Positions 6,775 through 47,274 of a stretch of 64,000 nucleotides of DNA are shown piece by piece. The translations under genes were made by a program, and so were the position numbers. The notes under the pieces are model-generated. The model searched no databases. It was not told where the DNA came from and worked only from the letters and a program-made list of their open reading frames with translations. The first letter of the stretch is position 1, and each line of letters starts with the position of its first letter. Where the stretch lies: the sequence record OR670491.1; one strand, given 5' to 3'.

Positions 6775-7077
6775 ATGGAAGACAACGGAATGAAATTTGA
6801 CATGTTTGAAGGTGTACCAGAGTACGATTTCACTCGAATTGAAGAAGGTGAACAATCTGAAGTAGTTAGTGTTACACTAAAAGCTGATTCCAAAAAGAAA
6901 CCAGCAGAGCGTCGTGCTCGTTCTCAAGAAGAATATGAAACCTTCATCGAGAGCGTACACTATGAAACGTTCTATACTAAAGATGGTGCACCATATGAAG
7001 TTCGCGTTACAGTACTGAAGCCTGAAGTGAATCCACTTGAGAACCTTAAACCAGTTTACTGTTGGGCTAGTCATTAA
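6775..7077 (+). CDS. hypothetical protein
   Basis: AAGGA RBS, 100 aa. Confidence 0.75.
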   Translation: MEDNGMKFDMFEGVPEYDFTRIEEGEQSEVVSVTLKADSKKKPAERRARSQEEYETFIESVHYETFYTKDGAPYEVRVTVLKPEVNPLENLKPVYCWASH

Positions 7078-7085
7078 TAGTCAAG

Positions 7086-7113
7086 AGGCTGGGAGATAAT
7101 CCTGGCCTTTTTT
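7086..7113 (+). terminator. intrinsic terminator
   Basis: aggctggga/tcctggcct stem + T-run. Confidence 0.75.
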
Positions 7114-7128
7114 ATTCAGAGGATTTAA

Positions 7129-8082
7129 ATGAAATTATACCTAATTCCATGTTATGATATTGAAGATTACAATTACGCGGAAGATAGCGAAGGTGGTAAT
7201 CACGCTTCCGATATGAATGTATTCAGCGTAAGTACTCATAAGCATGAACGTTATACTAACTTTAGTACATTTCTTCAATATAATACTTTTGAAAATTTGA
7301 CATTTCGCCAGCGTTACAATGCTTACGAATACCAACTAATTGATATTTCAGATGATCTAACTTTTCAATTCATGCTATTAGGTCTAAAGGATTTCGATTT
7401 CATTGCGTATAATCATAAAACTAAGAAGATCTATGTAGGTAATAATTCATATCGTATTGCAGGATTAGCATCTGATCCTAGTGAAGAAGAACCAGATCAA
7501 GCTAATGCTTCAAGTTCGACTTCATTAGCGGGTCGTCGTCGTGCACAATCAAAACATAATTCTTCGTATGGTGGTCGTAGTAATAGACCATCACAGCGTA
7601 TGTTTACGTTCAATTCACCACAAGAAGAACCAGTACCATACGATGAAGAAGATCAAGAAGAAGTTCAGATTCGTATTGACAGTACTAATGGATACGATGA
7701 AATTAAAAAAGAATTAATGGTTTACATGGAAGATATCTACTACAAGATGTTCACTAAAACTGCCATCCATTTACGTAGTTCAGGTAGACATATCATCGGT
7801 GAACAGTCTAATAGTCTGTTTAGTGATGATGGATATTCGTCTGTGTATGACCCAAATGCAGTGCGTAACGCAAATCCAGTAGGTTACAAACGTACTAATT
7901 CCTCTTATGATGAAGCACTACAATTGACCACTGAAGAGTTTGGTTTTTTGTTTGAATCATACTTGAACGATGATGAATTGTGGATTAATACACAAAAGAA
8001 AATCCATCATAGACACAAAGAATGCATTCGTGCTTATACTTGTGATGCATGGAAAAAGTTCACAGAATGTGAGACAAAATAA
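7129..8082 (+). CDS. hypothetical protein, FQxS-motif variant with low-complexity middle
   Basis: GAGGA RBS; ISDDLTFQFMLL. Confidence 0.75.
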   Translation: MKLYLIPCYDIEDYNYAEDSEGGNHASDMNVFSVSTHKHERYTNFSTFLQYNTFENLTFRQRYNAYEYQLIDISDDLTFQFMLLGLKDFDFIAYNHKTKKIYVGNNSYRIAGLASDPSEEEPDQANASSSTSLAGRRRAQSKHNSSYGGRSNRPSQRMFTFNSPQEEPVPYDEEDQEEVQIRIDSTNGYDEIKKELMVYMEDIYYKMFTKTAIHLRSSGRHIIGEQSNSLFSDDGYSSVYDPNAVRNANPVGYKRTNSSYDEALQLTTEEFGFLFESYLNDDELWINTQKKIHHRHKECIRAYTCDAWKKFTECETK

Positions 8083-8098
8083 AAATTAGTGATATAAT
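8071..8098 (+). promoter_or_regulatory. early promoter
   Basis: GAGACA-16-TATAAT with TGn. Confidence 0.5.
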
Positions 8099-8100
8099 TT

Positions 8101-8134
8101 AAGGTGATAGCAGAGTTGTTATCACCTTTTTTTT
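8101..8134 (+). terminator. intrinsic terminator
   Basis: aaggtgatagc/gttatcacctt stem + T-run. Confidence 0.8.
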
Positions 8135-8750
8135 AATCCTGAAAGGTTCCATAAGGAAATGATTAAGACCTAATCCACTCGAAAAGTAGAGGGTAGTTGA
8201 GTAGTCCTTTCAGTACGAACAGCAGAAGAAACCCGTTAGATGTTGGCATAGTTTGAACCACTCACGGCAATGCGGCTGTATAAAGAACTCCGATAAGCAC
8301 ACAGAGAGTTCCTAGATAGACATATAAGGATCGCACCTTACGAGATTTGCTAAGGGAGATTTCACTTTGAAACGCGGTCGTAATTTATACAATATAGTTG
8401 CGTCCAAAATTTGTGAAATCAAATACAAGTACTGTTCATATGGTATTTGTATTATGTGTCGGGATGTTTAAGACCGACGACCGTTGCTACAAGAACCGCA
8501 ATAGAGAGAAACAGAGCAACCCGCTTTCGCCCCAGTACTGGGAATTTGTGATATGAATATGTGAAGACCATCAGCGTCAAACTTTTTGTTCTTTCCCCTG
8601 CGGGGGGATGAAATATGTTCAAACAAATCCCGTCAATATTAATTAAACTACTAATAAAGCTGAATTAGACATGCGAAGCGTGTATAATTCTACCGATTTT
8701 TATTGAGTGCTAACGAAATAAAAGTCGTGTACATTCATTGATGTTTCCAT
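8135..8750. ncRNA. candidate large structured ncRNA (or replication origin)
   Basis: ~620 nt with no ORF of 60 aa or more on either strand; at least 9 complementary helices including long-range pairings. Confidence 0.45.
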
Positions 8751-8757
8751 AGGAATA

Positions 8758-9300
8758 ATGATGTCTTCAAGAAAATCAAGTGTAAGTATTGTGTATAAGT
8801 CAAGTAATTTTTTGGATTGTAATGAACCTCAAGACTTTGAGAGTTTTAGTGGTTTTCAAATTATCAGAGAACGAGGTAAGCTCTCTTATATCAGAGAACT
8901 ACAAGACGGAATTGAGATTACATCTATTAAATTCAGACCTACACAAATACCCACAATCCTCAAAGCACAATATGGTAATTACTTCGAAGAGAGATACAAC
9001 GGGAACACTATTAGTTCTAAGTGTCACTTAATCAACGGAGATTTAGAAGGAGAGTACAGAAAGTATAGCCCCGATGGAACGTGCATTGGCGTTAAATATT
9101 TCTGTTCAGGAGTCGATGTAACCCAGGAGATCATTGACTTTTTGAAATTAAATTGCACAGTACTGACAATACATGAGTATAAGTTCACGGAAGAAGAAGA
9201 GTTTGTACTTATGGTCAGATACGGTTCACATTTTAAGTTTTACTATGAATATAACATTGACAGTAGTACTTTTGATAATATAGTACTTAACTGTCTATAA
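8758..9300 (+). CDS. hypothetical protein (MORN-like repeat segment, acidic-F motif variant)
   Basis: NGDLEGEYRKYSPDG resembles MORN-variant repeats; FTEEEEFVL. Confidence 0.6.
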   Translation: MMSSRKSSVSIVYKSSNFLDCNEPQDFESFSGFQIIRERGKLSYIRELQDGIEITSIKFRPTQIPTILKAQYGNYFEERYNGNTISSKCHLINGDLEGEYRKYSPDGTCIGVKYFCSGVDVTQEIIDFLKLNCTVLTIHEYKFTEEEEFVLMVRYGSHFKFYYEYNIDSSTFDNIVLNCL

Positions 9301-9316
9301 TCAAAGGATTGATAAA

Positions 9317-9844
9317 ATGAGTGAAAAGGATTCTACTCAAACAAATAAACATTCAGTACACTTCAGTACTGGAAAGGATAACTGGACTACACCGAAGGAA
9401 TTATTTGAAGATTTGGATGAAATCTGGGGATTTACATTAGATGCTGCTTGTGTTAAAGAAACAGCACTATGTGAGAAGTACTTCACACCAGAAGATGATG
9501 CACTTTCACAGGATTGGGGTAAGAATATTTGCTGGCTCAACCCACCCTATAGTGATTTGAAAACTTGGTTATCTAAGGCGGTGGATGCATACAATAATGG
9601 TGCAACAGTAATGATACTAGTACCTTCAAGAACTGATACTATTGCATTTCAACAGTACGCAGCTAAGGTATGTGATTGTGTATGTTTCATTAAAGGTAGA
9701 TTGCGTTTTGGTATTCCTGAAGAACCTGAAAAGAAAACTGATTCAGCCCCCTTCCCTAGTTGCTTGATAGTACTGGATAAGTACTTGACTCCCGCTAAAC
9801 TAAATTATCTTAAATCTCTTGGATTGGTGATGAAGAACGTATGA
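9317..9844 (+). CDS. dam: phage DNA N6-adenine methyltransferase (T1/HP1-type Dam family)
   Basis: WTTP..LF..L...WGFTLDAA, WLNPPYS catalytic motif, LVPSRTDT, FIKGRLRF, SAPFPS. Confidence 0.9.
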   Translation: MSEKDSTQTNKHSVHFSTGKDNWTTPKELFEDLDEIWGFTLDAACVKETALCEKYFTPEDDALSQDWGKNICWLNPPYSDLKTWLSKAVDAYNNGATVMILVPSRTDTIAFQQYAAKVCDCVCFIKGRLRFGIPEEPEKKTDSAPFPSCLIVLDKYLTPAKLNYLKSLGLVMKNV

Positions 9845-10380
9845 AAGAAGCTTGTGTAGTAACATTCGGGAGAGTTAACCCGATACATAAAGGACATGGA
9901 TTAGTGTTTGAAAAGGCACAATCCCTACAAGAACAGTACGATGCGGACTTAAAGATCTTCCTAAGTACCAGTACTGATAATGTTAAAAACCCCTTACCAC
10001 CTGAATTGAAAATGTATTACACAGAGGGATTCTATCCTAATGTGCAAGAAAACATTTGCATTGAGGACAATTTATTTGATATAATGAGAGAGTTAGATGG
10101 GAAGTACATGGATGTGTTGTTCATCTGTGGCTCTGACAGGATTAACTCTTTCCAAAAAACTCTTGACAGCTACAATGGTAAGCTGTATAATTTCTGTAAT
10201 ATTAAGGCAATCCAAGCAGGTATTGACCGTAATGTTAGTAAGTACAGTTCAACACAAATGCGTTCCTTTGCTAAGAATGATGACTTCGAAAGCTTCAGTT
10301 CATTTTTACCAGGGAATGATATCGACTTAAAACAAAAACTCTTTGAAGATGTAGTAAAATACATGAGGAAAGAATTATGA
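9841..10380 (+). CDS. cytidyltransferase-like (HIGH-superfamily) nucleotidyltransferase
   Basis: VVTFGRVNPIHKGH, ICGSDR, SSTQMR motifs. Confidence 0.8.
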   Translation: MKEACVVTFGRVNPIHKGHGLVFEKAQSLQEQYDADLKIFLSTSTDNVKNPLPPELKMYYTEGFYPNVQENICIEDNLFDIMRELDGKYMDVLFICGSDRINSFQKTLDSYNGKLYNFCNIKAIQAGIDRNVSKYSSTQMRSFAKNDDFESFSSFLPGNDIDLKQKLFEDVVKYMRKEL

Positions 10381-10667
10381 CAGTACTGTTCAAAACAAGC
10401 CCATTACTATGGGAACAAAATGAAGCAGCAGGATATCGTAAAGTTCATGTAGAGTACGAGGGTAACACTATCCTTGCTTTCGTTGCGAATCGTACTTTCG
10501 GTAAATGGACTTCACTGCTTATCCCAATGGGGTACACTTACAATCGTTCTGAAGTAACTGCTATCTCTAAGCTGTACAATAATGCTCCGGTAATTATGGA
10601 TCTACTTAGTAAAGACGATTTGACACATGAAGATGTGATTAAATTTCTGGCAACCCTGAATGCATGA
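10377..10667 (+). CDS. hypothetical protein
   Basis: ORF with ATGA overlap. Confidence 0.7.
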   Translation: MTVLFKTSPLLWEQNEAAGYRKVHVEYEGNTILAFVANRTFGKWTSLLIPMGYTYNRSEVTAISKLYNNAPVIMDLLSKDDLTHEDVIKFLATLNA

Positions 10668-10938
10668 GATTGAACTAACAGGATACTTTATGCAAGAATC
10701 CATGATAGAAACTTTCCACAATTTCGAGGCACTTGAGAGTACTCAAATGTGGCAGGTAAAATCAATTTTTGGCGTTTTCAGTACAGAACACCAAGAACTA
10801 TTGAATAAGTTATCGAGTACTGGTATACTGTGTACAATAAAGATTGGTGTTCATGTCCACAAAGGGTATGTCATTTATTTTGACAAATCCAGATATTTTT
10901 ATATTGTAAAGGAGCAATACATTGACAAATACAAATAG
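10660..10938 (+). CDS. hypothetical protein
   Basis: 92-aa ORF in operon. Confidence 0.55.
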   Translation: MHEIELTGYFMQESMIETFHNFEALESTQMWQVKSIFGVFSTEHQELLNKLSSTGILCTIKIGVHVHKGYVIYFDKSRYFYIVKEQYIDKYK

Positions 10939-11539
10939 TAATACTTATTTCCGCTACCTACGTCTCGGCCTGTCTCTACGTCCAATTCGTGGTAAATGTG
11001 ATTCTTTAGCGGACTTAGATTACGCTTATGCATTGCATTGTGATGGTGTACAATATGTCCTGGGTGACTTCGGTACGTTTGAAGAAACCAATGACAGTAC
11101 TGAACTAAAGACTGGTATTGATAATCTCAATCTCATTACCAACAGTTCACGTCATGATATTGTTCTTGAAATTCAAAACTTCATTGAACAAAATACTGGT
11201 AAGCGTACTTGGTCATATGTCGGTACTGATACCCAACTCTCTGTAGCGTTCGGTAATGACGAGGGTTATGTAGCCCAACTTATTATGGACTTTGAGAACG
11301 AAGAGAAGTTCCTTGAGTTCAAGGATAAGATTATGCAATCCTTGATTCATATGGGTATTCAAGAAGAGAATATGCCAGAGATTAAAGATATTGAAGAGTT
11401 TGTTTTAATCCCATCTGATGAGAAGTATGATGCGATGTTTACCAATCTCAAAGTTCCAGGAGTTATCGTGGAGTTCTTTGATGATGGTGATGACAGCATT
11501 TACATCGACCTAGATGACGATGGTGACGATGACGAATAA
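10922..11539 (+). CDS. hypothetical protein with acidic tail
   Basis: AAGGAG RBS; ends DLDDDGDDDE. Confidence 0.75.
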   Translation: MTNTNSNTYFRYLRLGLSLRPIRGKCDSLADLDYAYALHCDGVQYVLGDFGTFEETNDSTELKTGIDNLNLITNSSRHDIVLEIQNFIEQNTGKRTWSYVGTDTQLSVAFGNDEGYVAQLIMDFENEEKFLEFKDKIMQSLIHMGIQEENMPEIKDIEEFVLIPSDEKYDAMFTNLKVPGVIVEFFDDGDDSIYIDLDDDGDDDE

Positions 11540-11547
11540 TTTTTATT

Positions 11548-11571
11548 GCCCGATGTATGTCGGGCTTTTTT
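11548..11571 (+). terminator. intrinsic terminator
   Basis: gcccga/tcgggc + T6. Confidence 0.75.
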
Positions 11572-11585
11572 GTAAGGAATGATAT

Positions 11586-11870
11586 ATGAAATCAGAAGAT
11601 ATAGAATTTACATATAGAGTTCTTTATAAAATGTATGCAAATCCAGTTGAAAATGATTTCACTTACTATGAAACACTTAGAACAATATGGATAATTTACT
11701 TACAAAATATTAAAGATTATTTCATAGGAAAACATATAACAATTAATAACATAAAATATAAATGTACTGATGTTACTAGTTATAGTGGGAAACTATCTAT
11801 TGAATTTTATCATCAAAATTCTTTTTATAGAAGATATCTTTCGGAGGTTAATTTGAATGATATTCAGTGA
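11586..11870 (+). CDS. small hypothetical protein (YxGKxV family)
   Basis: EDIEFTY...YFIGKHI. Confidence 0.65.
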   Translation: MKSEDIEFTYRVLYKMYANPVENDFTYYETLRTIWIIYLQNIKDYFIGKHITINNIKYKCTDVTSYSGKLSIEFYHQNSFYRRYLSEVNLNDIQ

Positions 11871-12129
11871 TTTACAATTCACGTATAAATGTATATTCGA
11901 TATTAAAGAGTCAGATAAATTACTTGACAATTTGTGGAGAATGTATCTAGAAGAAATACGTGAATATTTTTCGAAAGATGGTGGCTACACTATTCTTTAC
12001 AATAACGTAAAGATGGAGTACCAATACCTCCATAGTTACAATGGTAGAATTGAGGTTAGATTCTTTTCTAGTCAAATTGGTGGAAGGGACTTTATTTTGG
12101 AAGAATTAGATGAATACGAAACAGTATAA
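11857..12129 (+). CDS. small hypothetical protein (paralog of 11586)
   Basis: SDLQFTYK, SYNGRIE motifs. Confidence 0.65.
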   Translation: MIFSDLQFTYKCIFDIKESDKLLDNLWRMYLEEIREYFSKDGGYTILYNNVKMEYQYLHSYNGRIEVRFFSSQIGGRDFILEELDEYETV

Positions 12130-12415
12130 AGACTGGCAATTCATATACAGATATTTGTACCGCCAGCACATCGATAGTATAGTTGAGAATGACGCATTTC
12201 GAATATTATGGCGTAGGGAGTTAGAAAAGCTTCGTTCACATTTCGTGGATTCTATATTCACACAAGATGGTCACATTTTCAAATGCGTTAGTGAGTACAA
12301 CATTCACTCATATGATGGTAACGTTGCTATAAGTTTTCATAAAATAACTGACGTTGATGATGGAAGAACATATACATACGAGATGACAAAATTACCGGAG
12401 AATCTTAAAACATGA
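12110..12415 (+). CDS. small hypothetical protein (paralog of 11586)
   Basis: KDWQFIYR, SYDGNVAI motifs. Confidence 0.65.
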   Translation: MNTKQYKDWQFIYRYLYRQHIDSIVENDAFRILWRRELEKLRSHFVDSIFTQDGHIFKCVSEYNIHSYDGNVAISFHKITDVDDGRTYTYEMTKLPENLKT

Positions 12416-12612
12416 TACACTGTCCACATTGTAACAGTACTCAAATCGCTCGCTTCCGTCTTGATTCAGACTGGGCTAGTGGTGCTGGTGATTTCTTTCC
12501 CGTCAATGATGATGCGGAATATACTGAAGAACAACATAAAGATTTTGATAAATCATGGCGACCTGATATTGAATGCTTTTACTGCCTAGCGTGTGGTCGT
12601 ATCCATGACTAG
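12412..12612 (+). CDS. small zinc-ribbon protein
   Basis: CPHC...CLAC. Confidence 0.65.
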   Translation: MIHCPHCNSTQIARFRLDSDWASGAGDFFPVNDDAEYTEEQHKDFDKSWRPDIECFYCLACGRIHD

Positions 12613-12838
12613 AGGTGAATTAGCCAGACGTACATTATCTATGCTTAAAGACTTCAACCACCAAAAAACAACTGAATATTACATTTCAACTTTACTTGAT
12701 TATTACTACCAGAGAAAAGTAATCCTGGGTCGTCATGAATTCACAGTGCTACACATGTACAGCAATGGTTTAGTATCTGTTAAAAATGAAACTTATGGTA
12801 CACAAATTTTAGCATTAAACATTCTTGGAGATATATAA
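12605..12838 (+). CDS. small hypothetical protein
   Basis: ATG at 12605 overlaps the upstream stop. Confidence 0.55.
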   Translation: MTRGELARRTLSMLKDFNHQKTTEYYISTLLDYYYQRKVILGRHEFTVLHMYSNGLVSVKNETYGTQILALNILGDI

Positions 12839-13015
12839 ATGAGTAATAAACTATTCTTTTTCCTATGGAGTCTGTTCTCTCTTACAGTACTGTCAATTGC
12901 AGGTGCTTATTTGTTTTTAAGCATGGATACATGGTATATCAATTTACTATGTCCATTTGTTGCAGTTGGATTTGGATTTACTTTACATAGTGTAATTAAA
13001 GACTTTAAAGAATGA
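12839..13015 (+). CDS. small membrane protein (not in ORF track)
   Basis: GGAG RBS; MSNKLFFFLWSLFSLTVLSIAGAYLFL..., two hydrophobic stretches. Confidence 0.6.
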   Translation: MSNKLFFFLWSLFSLTVLSIAGAYLFLSMDTWYINLLCPFVAVGFGFTLHSVIKDFKE

Positions 13016-13302
13016 ATACAGAATCCAGTACTAAACTGCTACTAAAAGACATAGAATTCACTACAAAGGTTTTATATGAGTACTGGTCAGACAAAATTTT
13101 AGTTCAGTGTAATTCTGCTATGACAGATTTATATTTCAATACAGTTGATATTTTTAGAAATGAATTAATGCACAAACCTGTATTGTACAGGAATGAAGAG
13201 TACCAAATAGCTGCTGTTTCAACCAGTGCAGGAATGCTATTCTTGGATATTGAAAATTATAATTCATTTAGACCTGATGTACATTGGAAAACTTTAAGAT
13301 GA
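13012..13302 (+). CDS. small hypothetical protein
   Basis: KDIEFTTK motif shared with 11586. Confidence 0.6.
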   Translation: MNTESSTKLLLKDIEFTTKVLYEYWSDKILVQCNSAMTDLYFNTVDIFRNELMHKPVLYRNEEYQIAAVSTSAGMLFLDIENYNSFRPDVHWKTLR

Positions 13303-13553
13303 ATCACAAACTAATTAATAATACAGCTACTATGCTTGCAGATAGTACGTATGAAATGGGGTTTGTCTCTAGGGCAATAGTAAAGCGTGAATTTCGAGAG
13401 AATATTCAGACATTGTATCAAGAAAAATATCCAAATGTTATTGACATATTGTTCACCTTTGATATACGTGTTTGCTTTACTAATTGCAGAAATCACCGTG
13501 AGCACTGCCCTTTGGATAAATTTGATATCTATTTCTCTACACCAGAGGTTTAA
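13299..13553 (+). CDS. small hypothetical protein
   Basis: ATGA overlap; similar to 13554. Confidence 0.55.
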   Translation: MNHKLINNTATMLADSTYEMGFVSRAIVKREFRENIQTLYQEKYPNVIDILFTFDIRVCFTNCRNHREHCPLDKFDIYFSTPEV

Positions 13554-13832
13554 ATGACTCAACTTATTAACTGCAATCTTACCCAGCATACTATGAGTAT
13601 GCTTCATAAAAGCCTCCATGAAGAAAATATGAACATACAGAATGATTTGAGAATGAAGATAAAAAATGATCTCAATCGAATAATCAATATGTATTACAAG
13701 ACTAAACACAGTTCTATAATTAGTACATATTATGATTATGACCGCATTCGTGTTTCATACATCAACCGTAGCGGTAGTTTATGTGAGTCATACCTTGATA
13801 CTGTTATTGTTGAAAATATCCGTACAATTTAG
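13554..13832 (+). CDS. small hypothetical protein
   Basis: GAGG RBS; LINCNLT echoes LINNTAT of 13299. Confidence 0.6.
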   Translation: MTQLINCNLTQHTMSMLHKSLHEENMNIQNDLRMKIKNDLNRIINMYYKTKHSSIISTYYDYDRIRVSYINRSGSLCESYLDTVIVENIRTI

Positions 13833-13834
13833 TC

Positions 13835-13862
13835 TGAACAAAATCTCAAGAAGTGATATAAT
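13835..13862 (+). promoter_or_regulatory. early promoter
   Basis: TGAACA-16-TATAAT with TGn. Confidence 0.55.
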
Positions 13863-13893
13863 AGTTGGTATGGAATAATAACTAACACAAGGA

Positions 13894-14631
13894 GTGTGTA
13901 AAGTGCTTGACCGTATCCGTTTTGCGACAGAGATCGCTAATCAAATGAATATTGCAAATTTTCAAATGCTCACATCTGTTATGGCTGAACATGCAACAGC
14001 GTATTCAGTAAGTGGTGTTCAGTGTGGACAAGAAAACCTTTTGGCTGATGTTTACAGTGAAGTCCAAAGTAAACAGTACAGCGTTAAAACATTCAGAGAT
14101 AAGTTTGTTAGTCTCTATATGAATGAAGATATTAAAGAAGACCGTAAATTCACGGACTTTATTATCGAACGAAGAGTGTCGGGAGTATCAAATCCTAATG
14201 CAGATAGTGATTCTGTATTTGCTGAAGTACTGAAAGATATATACGAAAATGAAGCTAAAAGTCTTAATCATTACAATGTACGTGAAACTAACACAGTGCT
14301 CTTGGGATATGATGAAGATGACCAGTACTACTATTTTCGTATGACCGAAGTACCATTTGAGTACCCTACACCACAAAGCACTTCAATTAAAGAGTTCACC
14401 GAGAAAAGTAAAAACTTCAAAATGCACGAAGGAAATCGTTGCAGTGTAGAAGGTTATGATGAAAACGGCACACATGTCTATAGCTGGGTCCACCCTAACT
14501 GTCAGACATATACTCGTTGCTTAAAGAAACGTTATAATCTTGAAGAACATGAATCTTTTTACTTTAAAGTTAAAAAACAAGAATACAATCGCCCTGCTGA
14601 CTCTGAGCTAATGGGAATGATTTACTTCTAA
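13894..14631 (+). CDS. hypothetical protein
   Basis: AAGGAG RBS, GTG start, 245 aa. Confidence 0.75.
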   Translation: MCKVLDRIRFATEIANQMNIANFQMLTSVMAEHATAYSVSGVQCGQENLLADVYSEVQSKQYSVKTFRDKFVSLYMNEDIKEDRKFTDFIIERRVSGVSNPNADSDSVFAEVLKDIYENEAKSLNHYNVRETNTVLLGYDEDDQYYYFRMTEVPFEYPTPQSTSIKEFTEKSKNFKMHEGNRCSVEGYDENGTHVYSWVHPNCQTYTRCLKKRYNLEEHESFYFKVKKQEYNRPADSELMGMIYF

Positions 14632-14641
14632 GGACTATAGT

Positions 14642-14914
14642 ATGATAAATGATGAATTGAAGCGTGATTTATGGACGTATGATTATCTGGTTGATTTGGA
14701 TTGTGGTTGGAAATATAACTATGTAACACATGCTATACTATCTGATCACAGTATTAAGATATATAACACGTACCATAAGAAGCCAATTCATCACTATGGA
14801 ATGAATAAGTCTGGAATAATTGATGACATTGAATTTGACGTATTTGGTGTATACATACACGTTTCCTTCCTTGATGGTACACAGGGTTTATACACTATAG
14901 ATGAAATGAATTAA
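14642..14914 (+). CDS. hypothetical protein
   Basis: AAGGA RBS. Confidence 0.6.
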   Translation: MINDELKRDLWTYDYLVDLDCGWKYNYVTHAILSDHSIKIYNTYHKKPIHHYGMNKSGIIDDIEFDVFGVYIHVSFLDGTQGLYTIDEMN

Positions 14915-14915
14915 T

Positions 14916-14940
14916 GACCAGCACTGTGCTGGTCTTTTTT
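14916..14940 (+). terminator. intrinsic terminator
   Basis: gaccagca/tgctggtc + T6. Confidence 0.75.
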
Positions 14941-14953
14941 GTAGGAATACATA

Positions 14954-15643
14954 ATGATTAAAGATATAGATAAAGTACTGTTTGTACTAAAAGGTATAGT
15001 CACTTTGTATCGTGATATTACAAATATGCAATCCACCTTTGGATTAAAAGACATGGAAACTGAATATACACATTTGGAATACCTTAAATCGTCCCTATGT
15101 ACCGAGGATTCGGAGTACTCAATTCATCCAGTACTGGTAGAGCCATTTCAGGGTACTGGGTTCGGTATTTTCGATAAGAACATGGAACTAATTTCGATGT
15201 TCAGAGTTATGGACGGTCTTATCAACAGAACAGTACTATACAGTACGTGGGCTAACATAAATCCAAAATATCCAACGATTAAAGCCTTTGATGGTTCCCA
15301 AAAAGAAATAACCGTCGATGTTGATGAGAACATGACAGAGGAAGAACACTTCCAGACTTTAATGTTCAGGCAAATGCCAGAGTATAAACATATGATTGAT
15401 GCAATCAATTATACTAAAGAGATACTTCCTGCACTTGAAGTAAACAAATTCATGCACCCTGTTGATTACAATCACTTGAACTTAGATTTATCTAATACAC
15501 ACTTCTCTGAAAAGGTATTACAGTGTATTCAAAATGATACTAAGTTTGATTTCCTAAAAATACTAAAAGAAAATCCAAGAACAGATTTCTTTAAAGAATA
15601 TAATAATTCGTTCAGTACTGGCGATACTTCATGGTGGAAATAA
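14954..15643 (+). CDS. hypothetical protein, FQxS-motif family
   Basis: MTEEEHFQTLM. Confidence 0.7.
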   Translation: MIKDIDKVLFVLKGIVTLYRDITNMQSTFGLKDMETEYTHLEYLKSSLCTEDSEYSIHPVLVEPFQGTGFGIFDKNMELISMFRVMDGLINRTVLYSTWANINPKYPTIKAFDGSQKEITVDVDENMTEEEHFQTLMFRQMPEYKHMIDAINYTKEILPALEVNKFMHPVDYNHLNLDLSNTHFSEKVLQCIQNDTKFDFLKILKENPRTDFFKEYNNSFSTGDTSWWK

Positions 15644-15906
15644 TGGACATACAATCTCAATTACAATTGTTAACAGTACTTGAAGATGCGGCGTTTCAGG
15701 TTGTATCAGATATAAACAAATTACTCCCACCTGGAACTAAAGTACGTGTTAGAGAGAAGAGTTATAATACTTTCGAAATAGTTGAACAGGAATTAACTGT
15801 AAAAAAAGTAACTTATTATGACTCAACATTATGTATTCAGTGCGAAGATAAAGACGAGATGTTATTGTATTATAATCAACACACAGATATAGAGGTAATA
15901 TCATGA
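15631..15906 (+). CDS. small hypothetical protein
   Basis: ORF in operon; start may be 15643. Confidence 0.6.
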   Translation: MVEIMDIQSQLQLLTVLEDAAFQVVSDINKLLPPGTKVRVREKSYNTFEIVEQELTVKKVTYYDSTLCIQCEDKDEMLLYYNQHTDIEVIS

Positions 15907-17045
15907 CACATTTACAAATATACGAAGACCTAATGCACTTGTGCAAAACAAATGAAGCATTTTTTTATGTTGATCATAAAAGTCCGGCTGGTGGTACATA
16001 CCGTGTATTCACCTATCGTCTGGCTTCTTACACAGATTTCAGTCTTCCTAATGCACTGGAAACACGTGGTTCTATGTGGGAGATTGATGAAGATGGTGAA
16101 ATGATTCGTTGTGCTTCGCGTGCAATGAAAAAGTTCTTCAATGCTTACGAGAACCCATTTACAATGTTCAGTCCAGATACAACATGCGATGATATTGCTA
16201 TCGTGATGCCTAAACTGGATGGTTCAATCATCAGTACATTTCGTGATAATGATGGTGAAATCCGTTGTAAATCACATACTTCCTTGTCATCTGACCACGC
16301 AATTAACAGTACTCGACTATTGAACGAGAACCGTAATTTGTATGATTATGTAGACGAAGCTGAACGTTTAGGTTATACTGTGAATCTGGAGTATACAAGT
16401 CCAGAGTACCGAATAGTATTACCATATCAAGTAGAACAGTTATTTGTACTTAATGTTCGTCATCGATTGAGTGGTGAGTTGTTATGCGGTGCTGCATTAC
16501 GTTCGAAGTTCCCTTGTTTAGCACAATACAGTACTAACATGACAGGTAATAACATCTGTTCATCGTTTCCGGTGCGTTCTACCTTCAAAGAAAGTGTAGA
16601 TGAAGTACGTAAAATGGTTGACATTGAAGGATTTGTGTGTATCCTAAATAATGGTACAATGTGCAAATTGAAAACTGATTGGTATTGTTCATTGCATCTT
16701 ACAAAAGACAGTATTCTTATACCGTCACATTTGTACGAAACTGTACTCAATGATGCCAGTGATGACCTGAAACAATTGTTCAGTACTGATGAATATGCAA
16801 TGCAGTTGATATTAAAAATGGAACAGCGTGTCTTTTCATGCTATAATGCTTTACAAGATGAAGTAGAGAGCTTCGTCCAACAATACAAGCACTTGGAGCG
16901 AAAGGAATTCGCAATGAAGGTTCAGGAATGTCTTAAGAATGAACTGAACCGTCAGGGCTTGGCCTTTGCGTTGTACAACGGTAAAGTGGTGAATTATAAA
17001 GAAACTTTATTGAAGTACTACAAAGATGTACTAAAGGATTTTTAG
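15903..17045 (+). CDS. rnlA: RNA ligase 1 (T4 Rnl1/gp63-like)
   Basis: ETRG, KKFFN, adenylation motif PKLDGS, NLEYTSP, EGFV, KLKTDWY. Confidence 0.92.
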   Translation: MTHLQIYEDLMHLCKTNEAFFYVDHKSPAGGTYRVFTYRLASYTDFSLPNALETRGSMWEIDEDGEMIRCASRAMKKFFNAYENPFTMFSPDTTCDDIAIVMPKLDGSIISTFRDNDGEIRCKSHTSLSSDHAINSTRLLNENRNLYDYVDEAERLGYTVNLEYTSPEYRIVLPYQVEQLFVLNVRHRLSGELLCGAALRSKFPCLAQYSTNMTGNNICSSFPVRSTFKESVDEVRKMVDIEGFVCILNNGTMCKLKTDWYCSLHLTKDSILIPSHLYETVLNDASDDLKQLFSTDEYAMQLILKMEQRVFSCYNALQDEVESFVQQYKHLERKEFAMKVQECLKNELNRQGLAFALYNGKVVNYKETLLKYYKDVLKDF

Positions 17046-17071
17046 TACTAACTAGCCTAGCACAAGGAGAA

Positions 17072-17329
17072 GTGATGGCTAAACCTAAGTATAAAAATGA
17101 CGGTTCCCTTTCTCCGACCGAGTTCAGGAAAATACAACAAGATATCGATGAATTACAGCACAAACGCTCAAAGAAAGGTGTGAAGATTAGTAAGAAAAGA
17201 ATCGAGAATACTTTTGGGTGTAGTAGTACTGAATACAAGAAGAAGAGGAAACCAAAAGACGTGAAACCGAGAATACATGATGTGTCTCGACATACGTCTA
17301 AACGTGAAAACAAATTCGATCCACTATAA
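17072..17329 (+). CDS. small basic hypothetical protein
   Basis: AAGGAG RBS; Lys/Arg-rich. Confidence 0.65.
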   Translation: MMAKPKYKNDGSLSPTEFRKIQQDIDELQHKRSKKGVKISKKRIENTFGCSSTEYKKKRKPKDVKPRIHDVSRHTSKRENKFDPL

Positions 17330-17338
17330 GGAGTTCAT

Positions 17339-17569
17339 ATGAAAGTTGAAGTTCAGCATAGTATTGTACAAGATATGTCCGTTGTGAAATTTCTATCATT
17401 GAAAGATTATTTCAGATGCATCAAGTTCCTAGAAGAATCGAAACTACAGTGGACACCGTTGAAGTACAGTTCATCCAATGATACAGCCAGTATTCGTTGT
17501 GATGAATCTGTGCTTGTGAAAATCTCTAAGAGATTTGGGGTAGGTAAAGTTAATGAGCACAGTAAGTGA
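17339..17569 (+). CDS. hypothetical protein
   Basis: AAGGAG RBS. Confidence 0.6.
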   Translation: MKVEVQHSIVQDMSVVKFLSLKDYFRCIKFLEESKLQWTPLKYSSSNDTASIRCDESVLVKISKRFGVGKVNEHSK

Positions 17570-17807
17570 TCTAAAATACTACAACAAAACTGCGGATACG
17601 TTTATTACTCATTTATATGAAGAATTTAGTCGTATCCGCACGGAATATACAGGTAAATGTATTTTTTATTGTTCTTATCATAGTGGCGAAATTGAACGTG
17701 CTTACATTACTAAAGTGAAGTTCAGTGATGACTATCAATTACTCTTTGAATTAGATAATTGTTTCGTTATTGAAGCTAGTTTGATAATGGATGTACTGGA
17801 TAATTGA
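17553..17807 (+). CDS. small hypothetical protein (YxGK family)
   Basis: SDLKYY...EYTGKCIF. Confidence 0.6.
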   Translation: MSTVSDLKYYNKTADTFITHLYEEFSRIRTEYTGKCIFYCSYHSGEIERAYITKVKFSDDYQLLFELDNCFVIEASLIMDVLDN

Positions 17808-17813
17808 GGACAT

Positions 17814-18128
17814 ATGAATAAAGAACTTGCACATGAAGGTATCGAAAAGTTAAAGTACATTGAAAGGGAACTAATAGAATCCGTCGAATCTTTGATAGAA
17901 GATTACGTTTTCGATTTTAAGAAAACATTGATTGGATGTAAAGTAAAATGCTGGGATCATACAATCAGAGAATGGTTCAGTACTATTATTCTTGATGTTA
18001 AAGTATCTCGTACTGCTATTGGTAACTTAGTAAATGGTGAATGCTTTGTATACACTGAATACAATAACGGAACACGTCACCTTTCAAGAGGATGGCACAG
18101 ACTCGAAGATGTAAAATTTATCGAGTAA
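17814..18128 (+). CDS. small hypothetical protein
   Basis: GAGGA RBS; LIGCKVKC. Confidence 0.65.
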   Translation: MNKELAHEGIEKLKYIERELIESVESLIEDYVFDFKKTLIGCKVKCWDHTIREWFSTIILDVKVSRTAIGNLVNGECFVYTEYNNGTRHLSRGWHRLEDVKFIE

Positions 18129-18140
18129 TAAGGAGTAATA

Positions 18141-19085
18141 ATGCCGACTATTACATTAACAGTTGGTTTGCCAGGATGTGGTAAAACTACATGGGCTGTT
18201 GAAGCAATTCGAAAAGCAAAGTCAAAGACTGTCAATATCAACCGTGATGACATTCGTGAGTCAATGGCTGGTTCACATGATGCATACAAATTCAACGACG
18301 CTAATGAGCAGTACGTAACTACATTACAGTTCAGTGCAGCCGATTTAGCAGCTAAGAATTCGTGGAACATCATCGTTTCTGACACGAACCTTAAACAAGG
18401 TTTTCGTGATAAATGGAAAATGTGGGCTTCAGACAATGGGTACGACTACAAAGAAAAAGACTTCTATCAGGATTTTGAACCTAAAGAAGACCGTGGTGCT
18501 GATGTACATGAATTCTTTAAGATTAAAGAATATGTAAAACTTTGTAAGACTCGTAACCTAAAACGCGAACGTTCAGTACAGGACAGTATCATTGATACTA
18601 TGGCACATACGTACTATTACAGTAAAATGCGTATGTTCAATGCGTATGAGCTTCAGAATTATGACTCATTACCGCATTGTATTATTGTTGATATCGATGG
18701 TACACTAGCTCATAAAGGGGGTCGTAATCCATTCGATGAAAGTACTGTCCTACAGGATACTCCAGACGAGGAAGTAATTCTTTCAGTAATTGCAGAAGCA
18801 CAGTTCTTTAAACGCAAGATTATCGTTATGTCCGGCAGGACTGAAGGGTGCAGAGAAGATACTGAGAAGTGGTTACTGACTTGGGGTGTGCCTTATGATG
18901 AACTATATATGCGAGCAATTGATGATAAACGTCCTGATGATGTAGTTAAGTACGAGTTACTATCTAAACACGTTGCTGGGAAGTACACGGTCAAGAAGGT
19001 TTATGATGACCGTGAGGCAGTAACATTTATGTGGCGTAACCTAGTAGGATTGAAAGTATTCCAAGTCGAACCTGGATTATTTTGA
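18141..19085 (+). CDS. pseT: polynucleotide 5'-kinase/3'-phosphatase (T4 PseT-like)
   Basis: GLPGCGKT P-loop, RDDIR, HAD motif DIDGT, YDDR. Confidence 0.93.
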   Translation: MPTITLTVGLPGCGKTTWAVEAIRKAKSKTVNINRDDIRESMAGSHDAYKFNDANEQYVTTLQFSAADLAAKNSWNIIVSDTNLKQGFRDKWKMWASDNGYDYKEKDFYQDFEPKEDRGADVHEFFKIKEYVKLCKTRNLKRERSVQDSIIDTMAHTYYYSKMRMFNAYELQNYDSLPHCIIVDIDGTLAHKGGRNPFDESTVLQDTPDEEVILSVIAEAQFFKRKIIVMSGRTEGCREDTEKWLLTWGVPYDELYMRAIDDKRPDDVVKYELLSKHVAGKYTVKKVYDDREAVTFMWRNLVGLKVFQVEPGLF

Positions 19086-19098
19086 TACAATAAAATAT

Positions 19099-19129
19099 AT
19101 GAGCGGATCATTTGATTCCGCTCATTTTT
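19099..19129 (+). terminator. intrinsic terminator
   Basis: atgagcgga/tccgctcat + T-run. Confidence 0.75.
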
Positions 19130-19147
19130 ATCTAAGGATAAAGTACT

Positions 19148-19405
19148 ATGGATATGTTACAAGTGCAATTAAAACAAAGTACTGACTTGATACTTTCTAT
19201 TATTGAAGATCTAAATCAACAGTACTTAGGAAAACGTGTCATAACTCATACAAAGATTAAAGGGTTTGTTTCGTTAATTTATTTTAATTCATATGAAAAT
19301 AAACTATGCGTTCGAATTAGAACCATAGATGAAGAAACTGGGTATGAGGATGGTGGATTAGCATCTATACCTTTTCAAAATTTAAGGTTATTAGAAGATG
19401 ATTAA
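19148..19405 (+). CDS. small hypothetical protein (YxGKxV family)
   Basis: QQYLGKRVI. Confidence 0.65.
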   Translation: MDMLQVQLKQSTDLILSIIEDLNQQYLGKRVITHTKIKGFVSLIYFNSYENKLCVRIRTIDEETGYEDGGLASIPFQNLRLLEDD

Positions 19406-19649
19406 AACAGAATTAGCATTAGTAAAACTGCATGTAGACTACGCAACAGTACTCGTAGAAGATCTATCAAAAAAGTACGTTGGTAAACGTGTGCGTTGCT
19501 ATTATAGTGAATATGATTATAAACATGATTTCCGTGTACAAGAGATTTTTCTGTTCGACGGGGTTATTAATATTCGTGTAATCAATGAACATAACCATAC
19601 CTATACATATGGCCTAAATGCAACTATAGAGGAATTGCCAGATGAATAG
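19398..19649 (+). CDS. small hypothetical protein (YxGKxV family)
   Basis: KKYVGKRVR. Confidence 0.65.
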   Translation: MIKTELALVKLHVDYATVLVEDLSKKYVGKRVRCYYSEYDYKHDFRVQEIFLFDGVINIRVINEHNHTYTYGLNATIEELPDE

Positions 19650-19938
19650 TGTTTTGTCAAAATTAAAAGAATTGAATTTCTATACTTACCTGTGGCTTGA
19701 TGAACAGGAACAGGTTGTAAGCAGATCTTATTCCCATATAATGATTGAGTTATCAAAGGATATACTAAAAACAGAAGTAAAAGTATTTTGTCCAGAAGCT
19801 AATATGGGTGGGAAGATTGTTGATTTTACTTTCGCTGGATTTATCAACTATAATTACGAACGTTCACTTGGTATTAAGGTTGAAATTGGGGAAGACGATT
19901 ATTGTACCTTTCAGTTGCCCGATTTGGTGATACAATGA
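19642..19938 (+). CDS. small hypothetical protein
   Basis: GAGGA RBS; overlapping-stop operon. Confidence 0.6.
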   Translation: MNSVLSKLKELNFYTYLWLDEQEQVVSRSYSHIMIELSKDILKTEVKVFCPEANMGGKIVDFTFAGFINYNYERSLGIKVEIGEDDYCTFQLPDLVIQ

Positions 19939-20234
19939 ATGAGGAAGATTTAAGAATATTAACCTACTATAGTAATCATTCGATAATTTTATATGAGATG
20001 GTTTATGAATACAAATACAGCGAGTATCCTTTATTTGATTTAGTACTGAATTTTTATAACGAAGTACGTGACAAATATTACGGTAAACCCATTGTAATAT
20101 TAGATGATACATTTTATATAGCAGCAGTGCATGGTTCATTAAATGGTATATTCTTTGATTTGAAATCGGATCTTAAATCAAAACATGTTGATGATAGTTT
20201 GTATATTTCGGAGATACCAAAATGTCAAATTTAA
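19935..20234 (+). CDS. small hypothetical protein (YxGK family)
   Basis: EEDLRIL...KYYGKPIV. Confidence 0.6.
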   Translation: MNEEDLRILTYYSNHSIILYEMVYEYKYSEYPLFDLVLNFYNEVRDKYYGKPIVILDDTFYIAAVHGSLNGIFFDLKSDLKSKHVDDSLYISEIPKCQI

Positions 20235-20548
20235 CAGAAGAAGATTTAAAGTATCTTCTGTACGTAGAAAAATCTACCATATTAATTTCGTCGGTTTGTG
20301 AAGAGTTTGACGATACCAGATGGAAAGGATGTGTGCCAACATACATCTTCGACACTATGGAAATATTGGAAAATAAGTTCTATAATAAATTAGTATATGA
20401 AAAGGAATATCCTAAAGTCAAACTTTATATTAAAGAATGCTTTTTCGCTGGACGCAGTGGTTTTATGTTTGATACAGGACGAAACGAAAAAGAAAAGTAC
20501 ACTTTTACTAGTGTTTATCTTGATGAGATTTTGTTAGCAAAAGATTGA
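20222..20548 (+). CDS. small hypothetical protein
   Basis: GGAG RBS; EEDLKYLL. Confidence 0.6.
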   Translation: MSNLTEEDLKYLLYVEKSTILISSVCEEFDDTRWKGCVPTYIFDTMEILENKFYNKLVYEKEYPKVKLYIKECFFAGRSGFMFDTGRNEKEKYTFTSVYLDEILLAKD

Positions 20549-20573
20549 CATTGAACTGGAATTGAACTATAAT
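20545..20573 (+). promoter_or_regulatory. perfect sigma70 consensus promoter
   Basis: TTGACA-17-TATAAT. Confidence 0.7.
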
Positions 20574-20886
20574 GGACGAACTATTAAAAGAAATACTACA
20601 ATGGGAAAAGGATTTTGTTTTCATCAGTGAACAAAGAAACAATGCACCAAAGAGTGTTCGATCTGCCATTGAGTACTACATTGATGAAATGTGTGAATAC
20701 CTGACTAAAAAGTACTGTCCATTTAGTTCAGGATATTCCACCAACAGTTTTGTAACCAAACGAGATGTAGGTGAAATTCATATTGTAAAACGCATCACAC
20801 CTGGATTTGGTAACTGGTTTGTATTCAATACTGAACAATCTGAATACCTATACATCGAAGATTTAAGAAATATTATCAAAAAATAA
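20572..20886 (+). CDS. hypothetical protein
   Basis: 104-aa ORF; its ATG overlaps the -10 box. Confidence 0.55.
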   Translation: MDELLKEILQWEKDFVFISEQRNNAPKSVRSAIEYYIDEMCEYLTKKYCPFSSGYSTNSFVTKRDVGEIHIVKRITPGFGNWFVFNTEQSEYLYIEDLRNIIKK

Positions 20887-20897
20887 GGAGAGTACAT

Positions 20898-21518
20898 ATG
20901 TTAACAACACTAGCAATTATTTGGGTTCTTGGTGTAATCATCACTGCTATGCTTGCATACAATCACAATCGCAATATCATTGGGTATTCTGTACTCGGTG
21001 TAGTACTGTCACCTGTGATTTCAATCGGTGTTCTCCTAATGCTAGGTGAACGCAACCCCAATCTATTCATCAATGACAACCGTGATAAGGTTACACCAGT
21101 ACCAGAAACTGTTATTCCTGAAGAACTAGCACCTGCACCGGAAGTTGTTGAAGTAATAGAAGAAGTCGTGGAACCTGTCAAACCAGTACCGCCAGTATTC
21201 CCTGAAGTGCAGGTTGTTCCTGAAGTTAAAAAGCATAAGTCCAATAAGTCCTCAAAGAAAGCACGATATACTAAAGGCAAGAACAAAGGTAAGAAACCAG
21301 ATACCCAAAGCACTTCCACTTCCACCACAACCACCACCAATACCCCTGATAACGCAGCAGGCATCGCTACAGCAGCCGTAATGACTGCCCTGTACGTTGG
21401 TGACGATTACAGTGATTACACCACTACAACGACGTATAGCTCGTCCTCTGACACTTCTTCATATGACAGTTCCAGTTCATGTGATAGCAGCAGTTCTTCT
21501 TCTGGTAGTTGTGATTAA
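20898..21518 (+). CDS. membrane protein with low-complexity tail
   Basis: AAGGAG RBS; two N-terminal TM segments; Pro/Glu, Lys, Thr and Ser/Asp tracts. Confidence 0.75.
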   Translation: MLTTLAIIWVLGVIITAMLAYNHNRNIIGYSVLGVVLSPVISIGVLLMLGERNPNLFINDNRDKVTPVPETVIPEELAPAPEVVEVIEEVVEPVKPVPPVFPEVQVVPEVKKHKSNKSSKKARYTKGKNKGKKPDTQSTSTSTTTTTNTPDNAAGIATAAVMTALYVGDDYSDYTTTTTYSSSSDTSSYDSSSSCDSSSSSSGSCD

Positions 21519-21519
21519 T

Positions 21520-21885
21520 ATGAAAGACCTGAAATACGTTTCAATGTATTACGAGGTACTCACTAATCAAATCCTAGAATACATCGATTCGGTCAGAAAG
21601 GATCTTACGGGTAAAACCGTAAGATTCACCGACGAATACATTGAACAACAGAACAGGGTTGAATCTTATACCTTCATTGATGACGATGGTACAATTTTTG
21701 AAGATGCAGAGGATATCACACATATCAGTACTGATATTAAGATGGAAGTCATTACTATTGTTAGTAAGAACACAACCAGACTATACGCAGTAGTTGAATG
21801 TCTATCATGTCCAGATGACACTGTGTATGATTTTGACCAATACATAGATCTTAAAAATTTAGTACTTATGGGAGTGGAGGAATAA
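21520..21885 (+). CDS. hypothetical protein (GKxV family)
   Basis: MKDLKYVSMYY...DLTGKTVRF. Confidence 0.6.
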   Translation: MKDLKYVSMYYEVLTNQILEYIDSVRKDLTGKTVRFTDEYIEQQNRVESYTFIDDDGTIFEDAEDITHISTDIKMEVITIVSKNTTRLYAVVECLSCPDDTVYDFDQYIDLKNLVLMGVEE

Positions 21886-21887
21886 TT

Positions 21888-22124
21888 ATGATGACATTTT
21901 TTGGAATTTATGGTTTCGTTGCTATATGTTCATTTGTATGCAACTTTATAGTACTAAATTGGGGTTGTTTCAAAGATGAACTAATCACCATAATTAGTCT
22001 ACAATCCGCAGCACTTATGGCTATTATATGGCCTGTAACATTGGTATATCTTCTTATCTCATTGGTGCGAGATGTAAAAGATAAGTACGTTAAGAACTCT
22101 AAAAAAGGTGAGAAACATGACTAA
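21888..22124 (+). CDS. membrane protein
   Basis: two hydrophobic segments, IIWPV. Confidence 0.65.
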   Translation: MMTFFGIYGFVAICSFVCNFIVLNWGCFKDELITIISLQSAALMAIIWPVTLVYLLISLVRDVKDKYVKNSKKGEKHD

Positions 22125-23114: not shown

Positions 23115-23117
23115 ATT

Positions 23118-23381: not shown

Positions 23382-23391
23382 GGAAATAAAA

Positions 23392-47267: not shown

Positions 47268-47274
47268 GGTACAT

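Follow-up and report, generated by a model that had tools for sequence, protein, structure and literature searches.

A family of large structured RNA genes, absent from Rfam 15, in Rak2-like jumbo phages and in mobile elements of Enterobacterales

Large and intricately folded RNAs are rare in bacteria and their phages. The known classes, namely RNase P, group I and group II introns, OLE, GOLLD, ROOL, HEARO and raiA, have each revealed catalysis, RNA-protein machines or, lately, RNA-only cages. The DNA analyzed here (the window) comprises the first 64 kb (64,000 nucleotides) of the 355,583-bp genome of Escherichia phage vB_EcoM_JNE01 (OR670491.1; hereafter JNE01), a Rak2-like jumbo phage of the genus Asteriusvirus. 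Positions 8080-8760 of the window were 100% identical to this record at equal positions, and window coordinates are genome coordinates. An initial reading of the letters (the original prediction) had marked 8135-8750 as a candidate multi-domain phage RNA. The analysis described below indicates that 8100-8690 is almost certainly a real structured RNA gene, a member of a family absent from Rfam 15. The RNA is predicted to be about 530-590 nt in length, to be read from the + strand and to constitute a stand-alone gene with its own host-type (sigma-70, extended -10) promoter. Among the large “ornate” RNAs associated with phages, the family is most aptly treated as a new class.

ROOL and GOLLD, which occur in Firmicutes, their phages and prophages, form RNA-only complexes according to a cryo-EM report (bioRxiv 10.1101/2024.12.08.627333). 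The JNE01 family resembles both in being large (0.5-0.8 kb), rich in conserved helices and pseudoknots, borne by phages and prophages, and without a protein partner encoded nearby. By contrast, it has no sequence or structure match to the Rfam models of ROOL and GOLLD, its hosts are Proteobacteria, and it is present as four to five diverged paralogues per jumbo-phage genome. ROOL and GOLLD also often adjoin tRNA genes, whereas copies of the JNE01 family do not; the window contains no tRNA gene, and the JNE01 tRNA cluster at 246-254 kb is at least 13 kb from any copy. OLE, an RNA of about 600 nt from Gram-positive extremophiles, is similar in size, in its intricate conserved secondary structure and in its invariant junction nucleotides, but it is chromosomal, shares a conserved operon with the genes of its protein partners, is not phage-borne and has no homology to the present family. 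In the Pseudomonas jumbo phage PA5oct, which is distantly related to the Rak2 group, four noncoding RNAs (ncRNAs) were found by RNA sequencing, among which ncRNA001 and ncRNA002 are abundant, promoter-driven, ORF-free (open reading frame-free) transcripts of 236-451 nt (PMC7318152). These are likewise several per genome, but no structure has been reported for them, and a relationship of ncRNA001 and ncRNA002 to the JNE01 family was rejected, as PA5oct 7000-24000 yielded no nhmmer --max hit to the family profile and lacked the family motifs. No description of the RNA was found in the literature on ncRNAs of jumbo and Rak2 phages, on ornate RNAs, or on the transcriptomes of phAPEC6 and Asteriusvirus, and papers on CBB, fEgEco12 and viral structured RNAs did not mention the family.

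In OR670491.1, nothing is annotated between 8082, where a 317-aa gene ends (stop codon at 8080-8082), and the next gene at 8761. The longest ORF within 8135-8750 was at most 56 aa on either strand, so the region is ORF-free as first described. It had also been called more GC-rich than its surroundings, which holds as a modest rise (0.39-0.40, compared with about 0.33-0.37 in the flanks).

A search of the whole JNE01 genome, rebuilt from the public record, identified four diverged copies of the RNA, all on the + strand, 69-80% identical and each within a gap free of coding sequence. Copy 1 is the region at 8135-8750, copy 2 lies at about 64,006-64,715, copy 3 at about 148,930-149,570 and copy 4 at about 266,950-267,590. 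Copy 2 begins just beyond the end of the window: its promoter GTGCTATAAT and body are contained in 64,006-64,715, and window positions 63990-64000 hold at most its first upstream bases. A repeat search of the 64-kb window found no second copy, iterons or repeat arrays. When the four paralogues were aligned, invariant blocks alternated with helices in which both strands had changed together.

For wider comparison, a set of 47 non-redundant sequences (<97% identity) with a median pairwise identity of 62% was assembled. In this set, the top column pairs by mutual information with average product correction (APC) were almost all Watson-Crick covarying; at the pair 8499-8548, for example, CG, UA and AU were found in 19, 18 and 10 sequences, respectively (100% canonical). 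Across 120 helix pairs in copy-1 coordinates, 87.7% of the pairings were canonical, compared with 70.9 ± 0.4% in column shuffles, and 879 double-change cells were counted, where the shuffled mean was 253 and the maximum 298; these shuffle statistics ignore kinship. When the partner was shifted by one or two columns, most helices fell to about 20-55% pairing. After P15 had been re-registered and P5a and four unmapped pairs removed, the resulting 112 pairs were 91.4% canonical across the 47 sequences. As an independent prediction, RNAalifold gave 68 pairs on a tool-made alignment, 45 of which showed compensatory changes. The compensatory changes, together with the covarying pseudoknots, the strand bias of G·U pairs and the conserved promoter described below, strongly support the proposal of a large, multi-domain structured phage RNA.

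The same data bear on whether the region might be a decayed protein-coding gene or conserved non-functional DNA. Small “hypothetical proteins” are annotated over it in several other phage records. However, these small ORFs differ between records, none within 8135-8750 exceeds the length given above, and the indels among the homologues do not come in multiples of three. The substitutions match up across helices and do not fall at third codon positions, a pattern on which a decayed coding sequence was rejected; this explanation is scarcely credible.

Rfam 15 (4227 covariance models, including group I and II introns, RNase P, tmRNA, 6S, ROOL, GOLLD, OLE, HEARO and raiA) gave no match anywhere in the window at gathering thresholds. 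When the cutoff was relaxed to E ≤ 10, only terminator-like small RNA models or chance hits were returned for 7900-9000, outside or across the core, and no family was matched inside the core in 12 diverse homologues. ARAGORN found no tRNA or tmRNA genes in the window, in agreement with the earlier remark that tRNA, tmRNA and intron hallmarks were lacking. A group I intron was considered and rejected, as the RNA lies between complete ORFs rather than within one and Intron_gpI was unmatched even at E ≤ 10.

The alignments indicate an RNA of three domains, 5′ (P1-P5), central (P6-P9) and 3′ (P10-P16), which are predicted to be joined by pseudoknots or loop contacts, of which at least five covary. 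All features given below are on the + strand. The 5′ domain (8135-8279) shows compensatory changes both in the four paralogues and in the 47 homologues. Its first helix, P1 (8139-8146/8206-8213), is 90% canonical with double changes in seven of eight pairs. The P2 hairpin (8147-8150/8155-8158), known from the alignments only, frequently carries a GNRA loop in homologues, and P3 (8170-8172/8194-8196 and 8175-8180/8189-8193) closes a conserved loop, GAAAAGUA. Pseudoknot PK1 (8201-8203/8214-8216) crosses P1 and is 100% canonical, as are P4 (8219-8223/8275-8279) and P5 (8233-8236/8264-8267), the latter enclosing a variable hairpin at 8239-8263.

The central domain (8280-8453) contains the conserved unpaired sequences GAUAGACAUAUAAGG and CUAAGGGAG. 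Here, P6 (8285-8290/8306-8311) is 95% canonical with double changes in all six pairs, and P9 (8422-8434/8441-8453) is 93% canonical with double changes in 12 of 13 pairs. Between them lie P7 (8325-8329/8336-8340) and P8 (8358-8365/8413-8420), which carries an inserted module, UACAAUAUAGUUGCGUCCAAAAUU, at 8388-8412. The alignment is poor inside P8 (8366-8412), where alternative pairings are in competition. Two tertiary contacts involve this domain: PK2 (8270-8272/8321-8323), in which the pair 8272-8321 is GC in 37 sequences and AU in 10, and PK3, which joins the P6 loop (8296-8299) to 8348-8351 and in which 8297-8350 and 8298-8349 covary.

The 3′ domain (8454-8637) is pseudoknotted and ends in a conserved tail, CAAAUCCCGUCAA, at 8623-8636. 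It comprises P10 (8458-8462/8474-8478), P11 (8483-8487/8516-8520; 100% canonical), which pairs into the loop of P13 (8504-8508/8524-8528; 100% canonical), P12 (8497-8501/8546-8550; 99% canonical), P14 (8531-8535/8538-8542), P15 (8563-8568/8574-8578), which is weak in copy 1, and P16 (8589-8598/8603-8612). The last is a G-rich, conserved hairpin with a UGCG loop; given that it is nearly invariant, covariation says nothing about it. PK4, between the P9 loop (8435-8441) and 8551-8557, is 94% canonical with double changes in seven of seven pairs. In addition, non-Watson-Crick covariation was observed between 8571 and 8628 (UU 33, CC 14) and between 8580 and 8636 (GG 23, AA 21), which links two CGUCA(A/G) motifs.

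All of the complementary segments listed in the original prediction are present at the positions given there, and seven of the helices proposed there (P6, P7, P8, P9, P10, P11 and P14) keep their pairing by compensatory changes in the 47 homologues. Others did not survive comparison. The long-range pairing gggaatttgt/acaaatccc (8540-8549/8623-8631) is 50% canonical and competes with the P14 hairpin, and the inner tttg/caaa and acgc/gcgt segments are 44% and 19% canonical, respectively.

Beyond the core, a 3′ module (8662-8690) consists of an outer stem, GAAUU/AAUUC (8662-8666/8686-8690), around a hairpin (8669-8674/8678-8683) whose inner loop is GAACGNAGUGA in most homologues. This module is kept 40-100 nt after the CGUCA(A/G) motif in jumbo-phage and prophage copies with unrelated flanking genes and is therefore probably part of the RNA unit. 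It overlaps a -10-like sequence, GTGTATAAT, at 8680-8688. An 11-bp A/U-rich hairpin, cgatttttatt/aataaaagtcg (8694-8727), lies outside the family-aligned core and was seen only in copy 1; it may be part of either the RNA or the leader of the 8758 gene. In prophage copies from five loci, shared motifs were observed about 100-200 nt past the core, namely a hairpin around CUCGCUUGUAAAGCGGG, and GATATCGNNAGGATTC. In temperate elements, the RNA unit may therefore reach far past the core. A palindrome, GUAC or AGUACU, recurs in the variable hairpins, P8 tips and 3′ linker of many copies, and could be either a sequence bias or a self-pairing motif.

Several of these features are relevant to the possibility of an RNA-only higher-order assembly that, like ROOL or GOLLD, multimerizes by loop contacts. 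At PK4, the 6-7-nt partner sequences differ from one JNE01 paralogue to the next but are complementary within each, and such a paralogue-specific contact could allow each RNA to self-assemble without mixing. A movable module, UACAAUAUAG..GUCYAAAAUU, is found in P8 (as in copy 1), in P14 or, in a few copies, in both, and peripheral elements of large folded RNAs behave in this manner. The absence of a nearby partner gene and the pseudoknot-rich, phage- and prophage-borne character shared with ROOL and GOLLD, for which RNA-only complexes are described in the cryo-EM report noted above, point the same way. Against this, covariation cannot separate intra- from intermolecular contacts, the ROOL and GOLLD models were unmatched, the copies do not lie beside tRNA genes, and the paralogue-specific loop sequences could be mere drift. 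Such an assembly is accordingly considered unlikely, if well short of fanciful.

Invariant unpaired nucleotides (GAAAAYGUA, GAUAGACAUAU, UAAGGGA, GACCGU, AGAAAC and CGUCA, the last occurring twice) cluster at the junctions of the compact pseudoknotted core, as might be expected of a ribozyme acting on other RNAs (tRNAs or mRNAs) or on itself. Complexity of the degree seen here is typical of large ribozymes. However, no known ribozyme family was matched, there is no exon/intron context, nothing points to a substrate, and the presence of four to five copies favors stoichiometric over catalytic action; catalysis by the RNA is judged improbable.

The strand and start of the structured RNA can be assigned with the aid of the pairing data and the upstream sequence. 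Across the proposed helices of the 47 sequences, 371 G·U pairs were found but only 108 A·C mismatches, and the helix pairs were 91.4% canonical when read as the + strand compared with 86.2% when read as the - strand; thus, the RNA is the + strand. The extended -10 promoter of the original prediction is real by consensus. A consensus scan placed it at 8070-8098, with a -35-like TGAGACA at 8070-8076 and an extended -10, TGATATAAT, at 8090-8098, from which a transcription start near 8104-8106 is predicted. Promoters of this type precede 44 of 46 copies, prophage copies included, as TGnTATAAT with TG(G/A)(G/A)AC(A/G) about 17 nt upstream. The class matches the “divergent RpoD-like promoter” (-35 TGAAACG) described for phages CBB and GAP32 (PMC5259590).

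Immediately after this promoter, a terminator scan identified P0 (8101-8134), which consists of a 12-bp hairpin (8101-8112/8117-8128) and a U run behind it. P0 is the terminator of the upstream gene and is possibly also a 5′ stem-loop of the RNA. A transcript starting near 8105 would retain an 8-bp hairpin and U8. The same order of promoter, hairpin and U run is found in the orthologous copy of 121Q, CBB, XbC2 and EJP2. P0 could attenuate transcripts of the RNA or serve as a protective 5′ stem. In many other copies, an internal terminator-like hairpin is present between P15 and P16, and conserved sequence runs on past it.

To gauge the spread of the family, 50,697 phage records were searched by BLAST. 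Matches were found in 62, all Rak2-like jumbo phages, at 4-5 places per record; their hosts are Escherichia, Salmonella, Klebsiella, Erwinia, Yersinia, Serratia, Cronobacter, Pectobacterium and Xanthomonas. The RNA region is 87-100% conserved within Asteriusvirus and 65-76% in other genera. In a tree of the copies, the copy-1 clade spans several phage genera while Asteriusvirus copies 2-4 group together, a topology that implies old as well as lineage-specific duplications. In IMG/VR and metagenome contigs, pattern scans followed by an nhmmer profile filter yielded ∼90 instances in 85 of 165 pattern-matched loci, and these reduce to the 47 non-redundant sequences used above. No copy was found in the temperate phage records and plasmids collected.

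Bacterial genomes (one per species), screened by pattern scan and profile filter, contained nine full-length or near-full-length copies. Six are in Serratia fonticola (complete chromosome), Serratia sp. 2723, Citrobacter amalonaticus, Enterobacter chinensis, Silvania hatchlandensis and an Enterobacteriaceae isolate, and three are in metagenome-assembled genomes, assigned to Buttiauxella, to an uncultured Enterobacteriaceae and, in one case, binned as Clostridium. These copies share 56-95% identity with one another and have the same promoter type as the phage copies. Partial matches were present in two of 5,426 complete E. coli genomes. In E. coli LR-29-1 (NZ_AP027515.1 3,472,142-3,486,515), the RNA occupies an unannotated 1.4-kb gap of an integrase-bearing island beside ffs, the gene for the signal recognition particle (SRP) RNA. 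Genes for DUF4326, DUF488 and dual-OB-domain proteins are close to the RNA in this island, and a JNE01 gene at 47251-47583 resembles the island DUF4326 protein (tblastn, 38% over 122 aa) but is not adjacent to the RNA in the phage. Judged by its sequence distribution, the family is one carried by mobile elements of Enterobacterales and relatives.

The neighbors of the RNA genes were then compared. Eight bacterial loci had scanned neighbors, and a large serine recombinase or tyrosine integrase was located upstream of the RNA in seven, directly so in six; in the eighth, the RNA is at the element boundary and adjoins a host gene. A CI-like repressor (HTH and Peptidase_S24) converges on the RNA from the opposite side in four bacterial loci, and several prophage loci have no co-directional gene directly downstream. 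In JNE01, neighbors analyzed with Pfam and PHROGs are unrelated between the four copies: hypothetical genes and a Dam methylase near copy 1, endonuclease VII and a baseplate gene near copy 3, and directly upstream of copy 4 (265,958-266,920) a sigma-70-family gene (Sigma70_r2, r3; PHROG “RNA polymerase sigma factor”) recorded as hypothetical. The Dam-type DNA N6-adenine methyltransferase near copy 1 corresponds to the gene at 9317-9844 (Pfam PF05869, E = 5e-34), also “hypothetical” in the record. Searching JNE01 by tblastn with the ORFs of the prophage loci revealed no flanking protein common to the phage and prophage contexts. Elsewhere in the window, a 205-nt direct repeat was observed at 33104-33557 as two copies, 75% identical and 249 nt apart.

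These arrangements are relevant to a cis-acting role, in which the RNA would be a put-like antitermination element or a giant regulatory 5′ untranslated region for the genes downstream. The put RNAs of phage HK022 are similar in being phage RNA elements just downstream of early promoters and present in more than one copy; they are, however, cis-acting and about 70 nt long, whereas the present RNA exceeds them ∼8-fold in size and, at several copies, lacks co-directional downstream genes. In JNE01, copies 1, 2 and 4 head long + strand gene runs without a clear terminator before the next gene, and the internal terminator-like hairpin of many copies would need read-through, both of which favor a leader of this kind. 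Conversely, the genes after copy 3 are convergent with it, cI and the prophage copies face each other, several loci have no co-directional gene directly downstream, and the downstream genes are unrelated between copies. A cis-acting leader is thus very improbable.

A replication origin had been named originally as the main alternative. In such a case, the transcript would form an R-loop in the A/T-rich DNA downstream and prime synthesis, with the four to five copies serving as origins of the 355-kb genome. ColE1 RNA II and the T4 oriF and oriG transcripts prime DNA synthesis via a persistent R-loop. They share with the present RNA a promoter-driven, untranslated form of ∼0.5 kb followed by A/T-rich DNA and, in T4, occurrence at several loci; the size of the RNA is near that of RNA II. 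The spread of the copies along the JNE01 genome (8, 64, 149 and 267 kb), the A/T-rich linker after the core and the presence of phage-encoded RNase HI and T4-like replication proteins are consistent with an origin, as is the finding that the promoter class lies mostly upstream of DNA-synthesis genes in CBB (PMC5259590). The family nevertheless differs from RNA II, oriF and oriG in that its pseudoknots, loop-loop contacts and invariant junctions persist from genus to genus and in that the prophage copies lie beside int and cI rather than replication genes. No R-loop primer is known to us to need loop-loop or pseudoknot tertiary structure of this kind. Furthermore, all copies are in one orientation, no iterons or repeat arrays were seen, and no link to a replication module was seen, either among the JNE01 neighbors listed above or among the prophage and island copies, which are flanked by the integrase and the CI repressor gene or sit at the element edge. 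The case for an origin is therefore weakened by the conserved RNA-level pairings and the prophage positions, and it is regarded as a distinctly improbable explanation.

The interpretation preferred here is that the RNA acts in trans and not as the leader of a neighboring gene, because flanking genes differ between copies, no flanking protein is common to phage and prophage, and convergent genes follow copy 3 and the prophage copies. It would serve in stoichiometric amounts as a compact scaffold or decoy, one that self-assembles or that has a conserved host macromolecule as its binding partner. Stoichiometric action of this type would explain why lytic jumbo phages carry several promoter-equipped copies and the temperate accessory region only one. 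Taken as a whole, a structured RNA gene family with a trans-acting scaffold or decoy mechanism is put forward tentatively, as a possibility somewhat short of an even case.

Several observations weigh against this interpretation or limit it. The scaffold or decoy mechanism is drawn from copy number, context and architecture only, and the invariance of some junction nucleotides would fit a ribozyme equally well. A search of the neighbors of the four JNE01 copies with Pfam and PHROGs found no gene for a partner protein. The terminator-like hairpin and U run directly after the copy-1 promoter would be expected to stop its transcripts, and both ends of the RNA, 5′ and 3′, are predicted positions. 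The alignments are MAFFT-based and the shuffle statistics ignore phylogeny, so kinship among the sequences can inflate them. Of the sequencing runs, X1 (wastewater “RNA”) gave even, DNA-like coverage of the whole 5.9 kb from strandless contigs, and metatranscriptome run X6 gave contigs scattered over the 5.9 kb with no strand information. In metatranscriptome run X5, also of strandless contigs, a single 257-nt contig was found within the 5.9 kb, at 8331-8587 and hence inside the RNA, and 41% of the words sampled from a prophage copy were present in a 12-Mb metatranscriptome run. These last two results are hints of RNA abundance, and as evidence of expression they are weak.

In summary, an RNA with a complexity comparable to that of the known large classes appears to be shared by jumbo phages and temperate elements, and is missed by current phage annotation, in which the region is left empty or filled with spurious small ORFs. 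It is conceivable, though doubtful at present, that with this family proteobacterial phages have their first large “ornate” RNA class, a protein-independent RNA machine (a ribozyme or self-assembling particle) that manipulates a conserved host process in lytic giants and temperate elements alike. If so, paralogue-specific kissing sequences would keep the four to five versions of the RNA apart within one infected cell. Given that the hosts are genetically tractable (E. coli, Salmonella, Serratia and Erwinia) and that the cultured phages 121Q, PBECO4 and phAPEC6 carry the RNA, its function is directly testable. The presence of several promoter-equipped copies in a lytic phage suggests that the amount of RNA is important, and the single copy in a temperate accessory region is consistent with a role in conflict between phage and host or in host takeover. 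Together, the multiple copies of the jumbo phages, the single prophage copy by integrase and CI and the dedicated promoter suggest that this role is dose-dependent.

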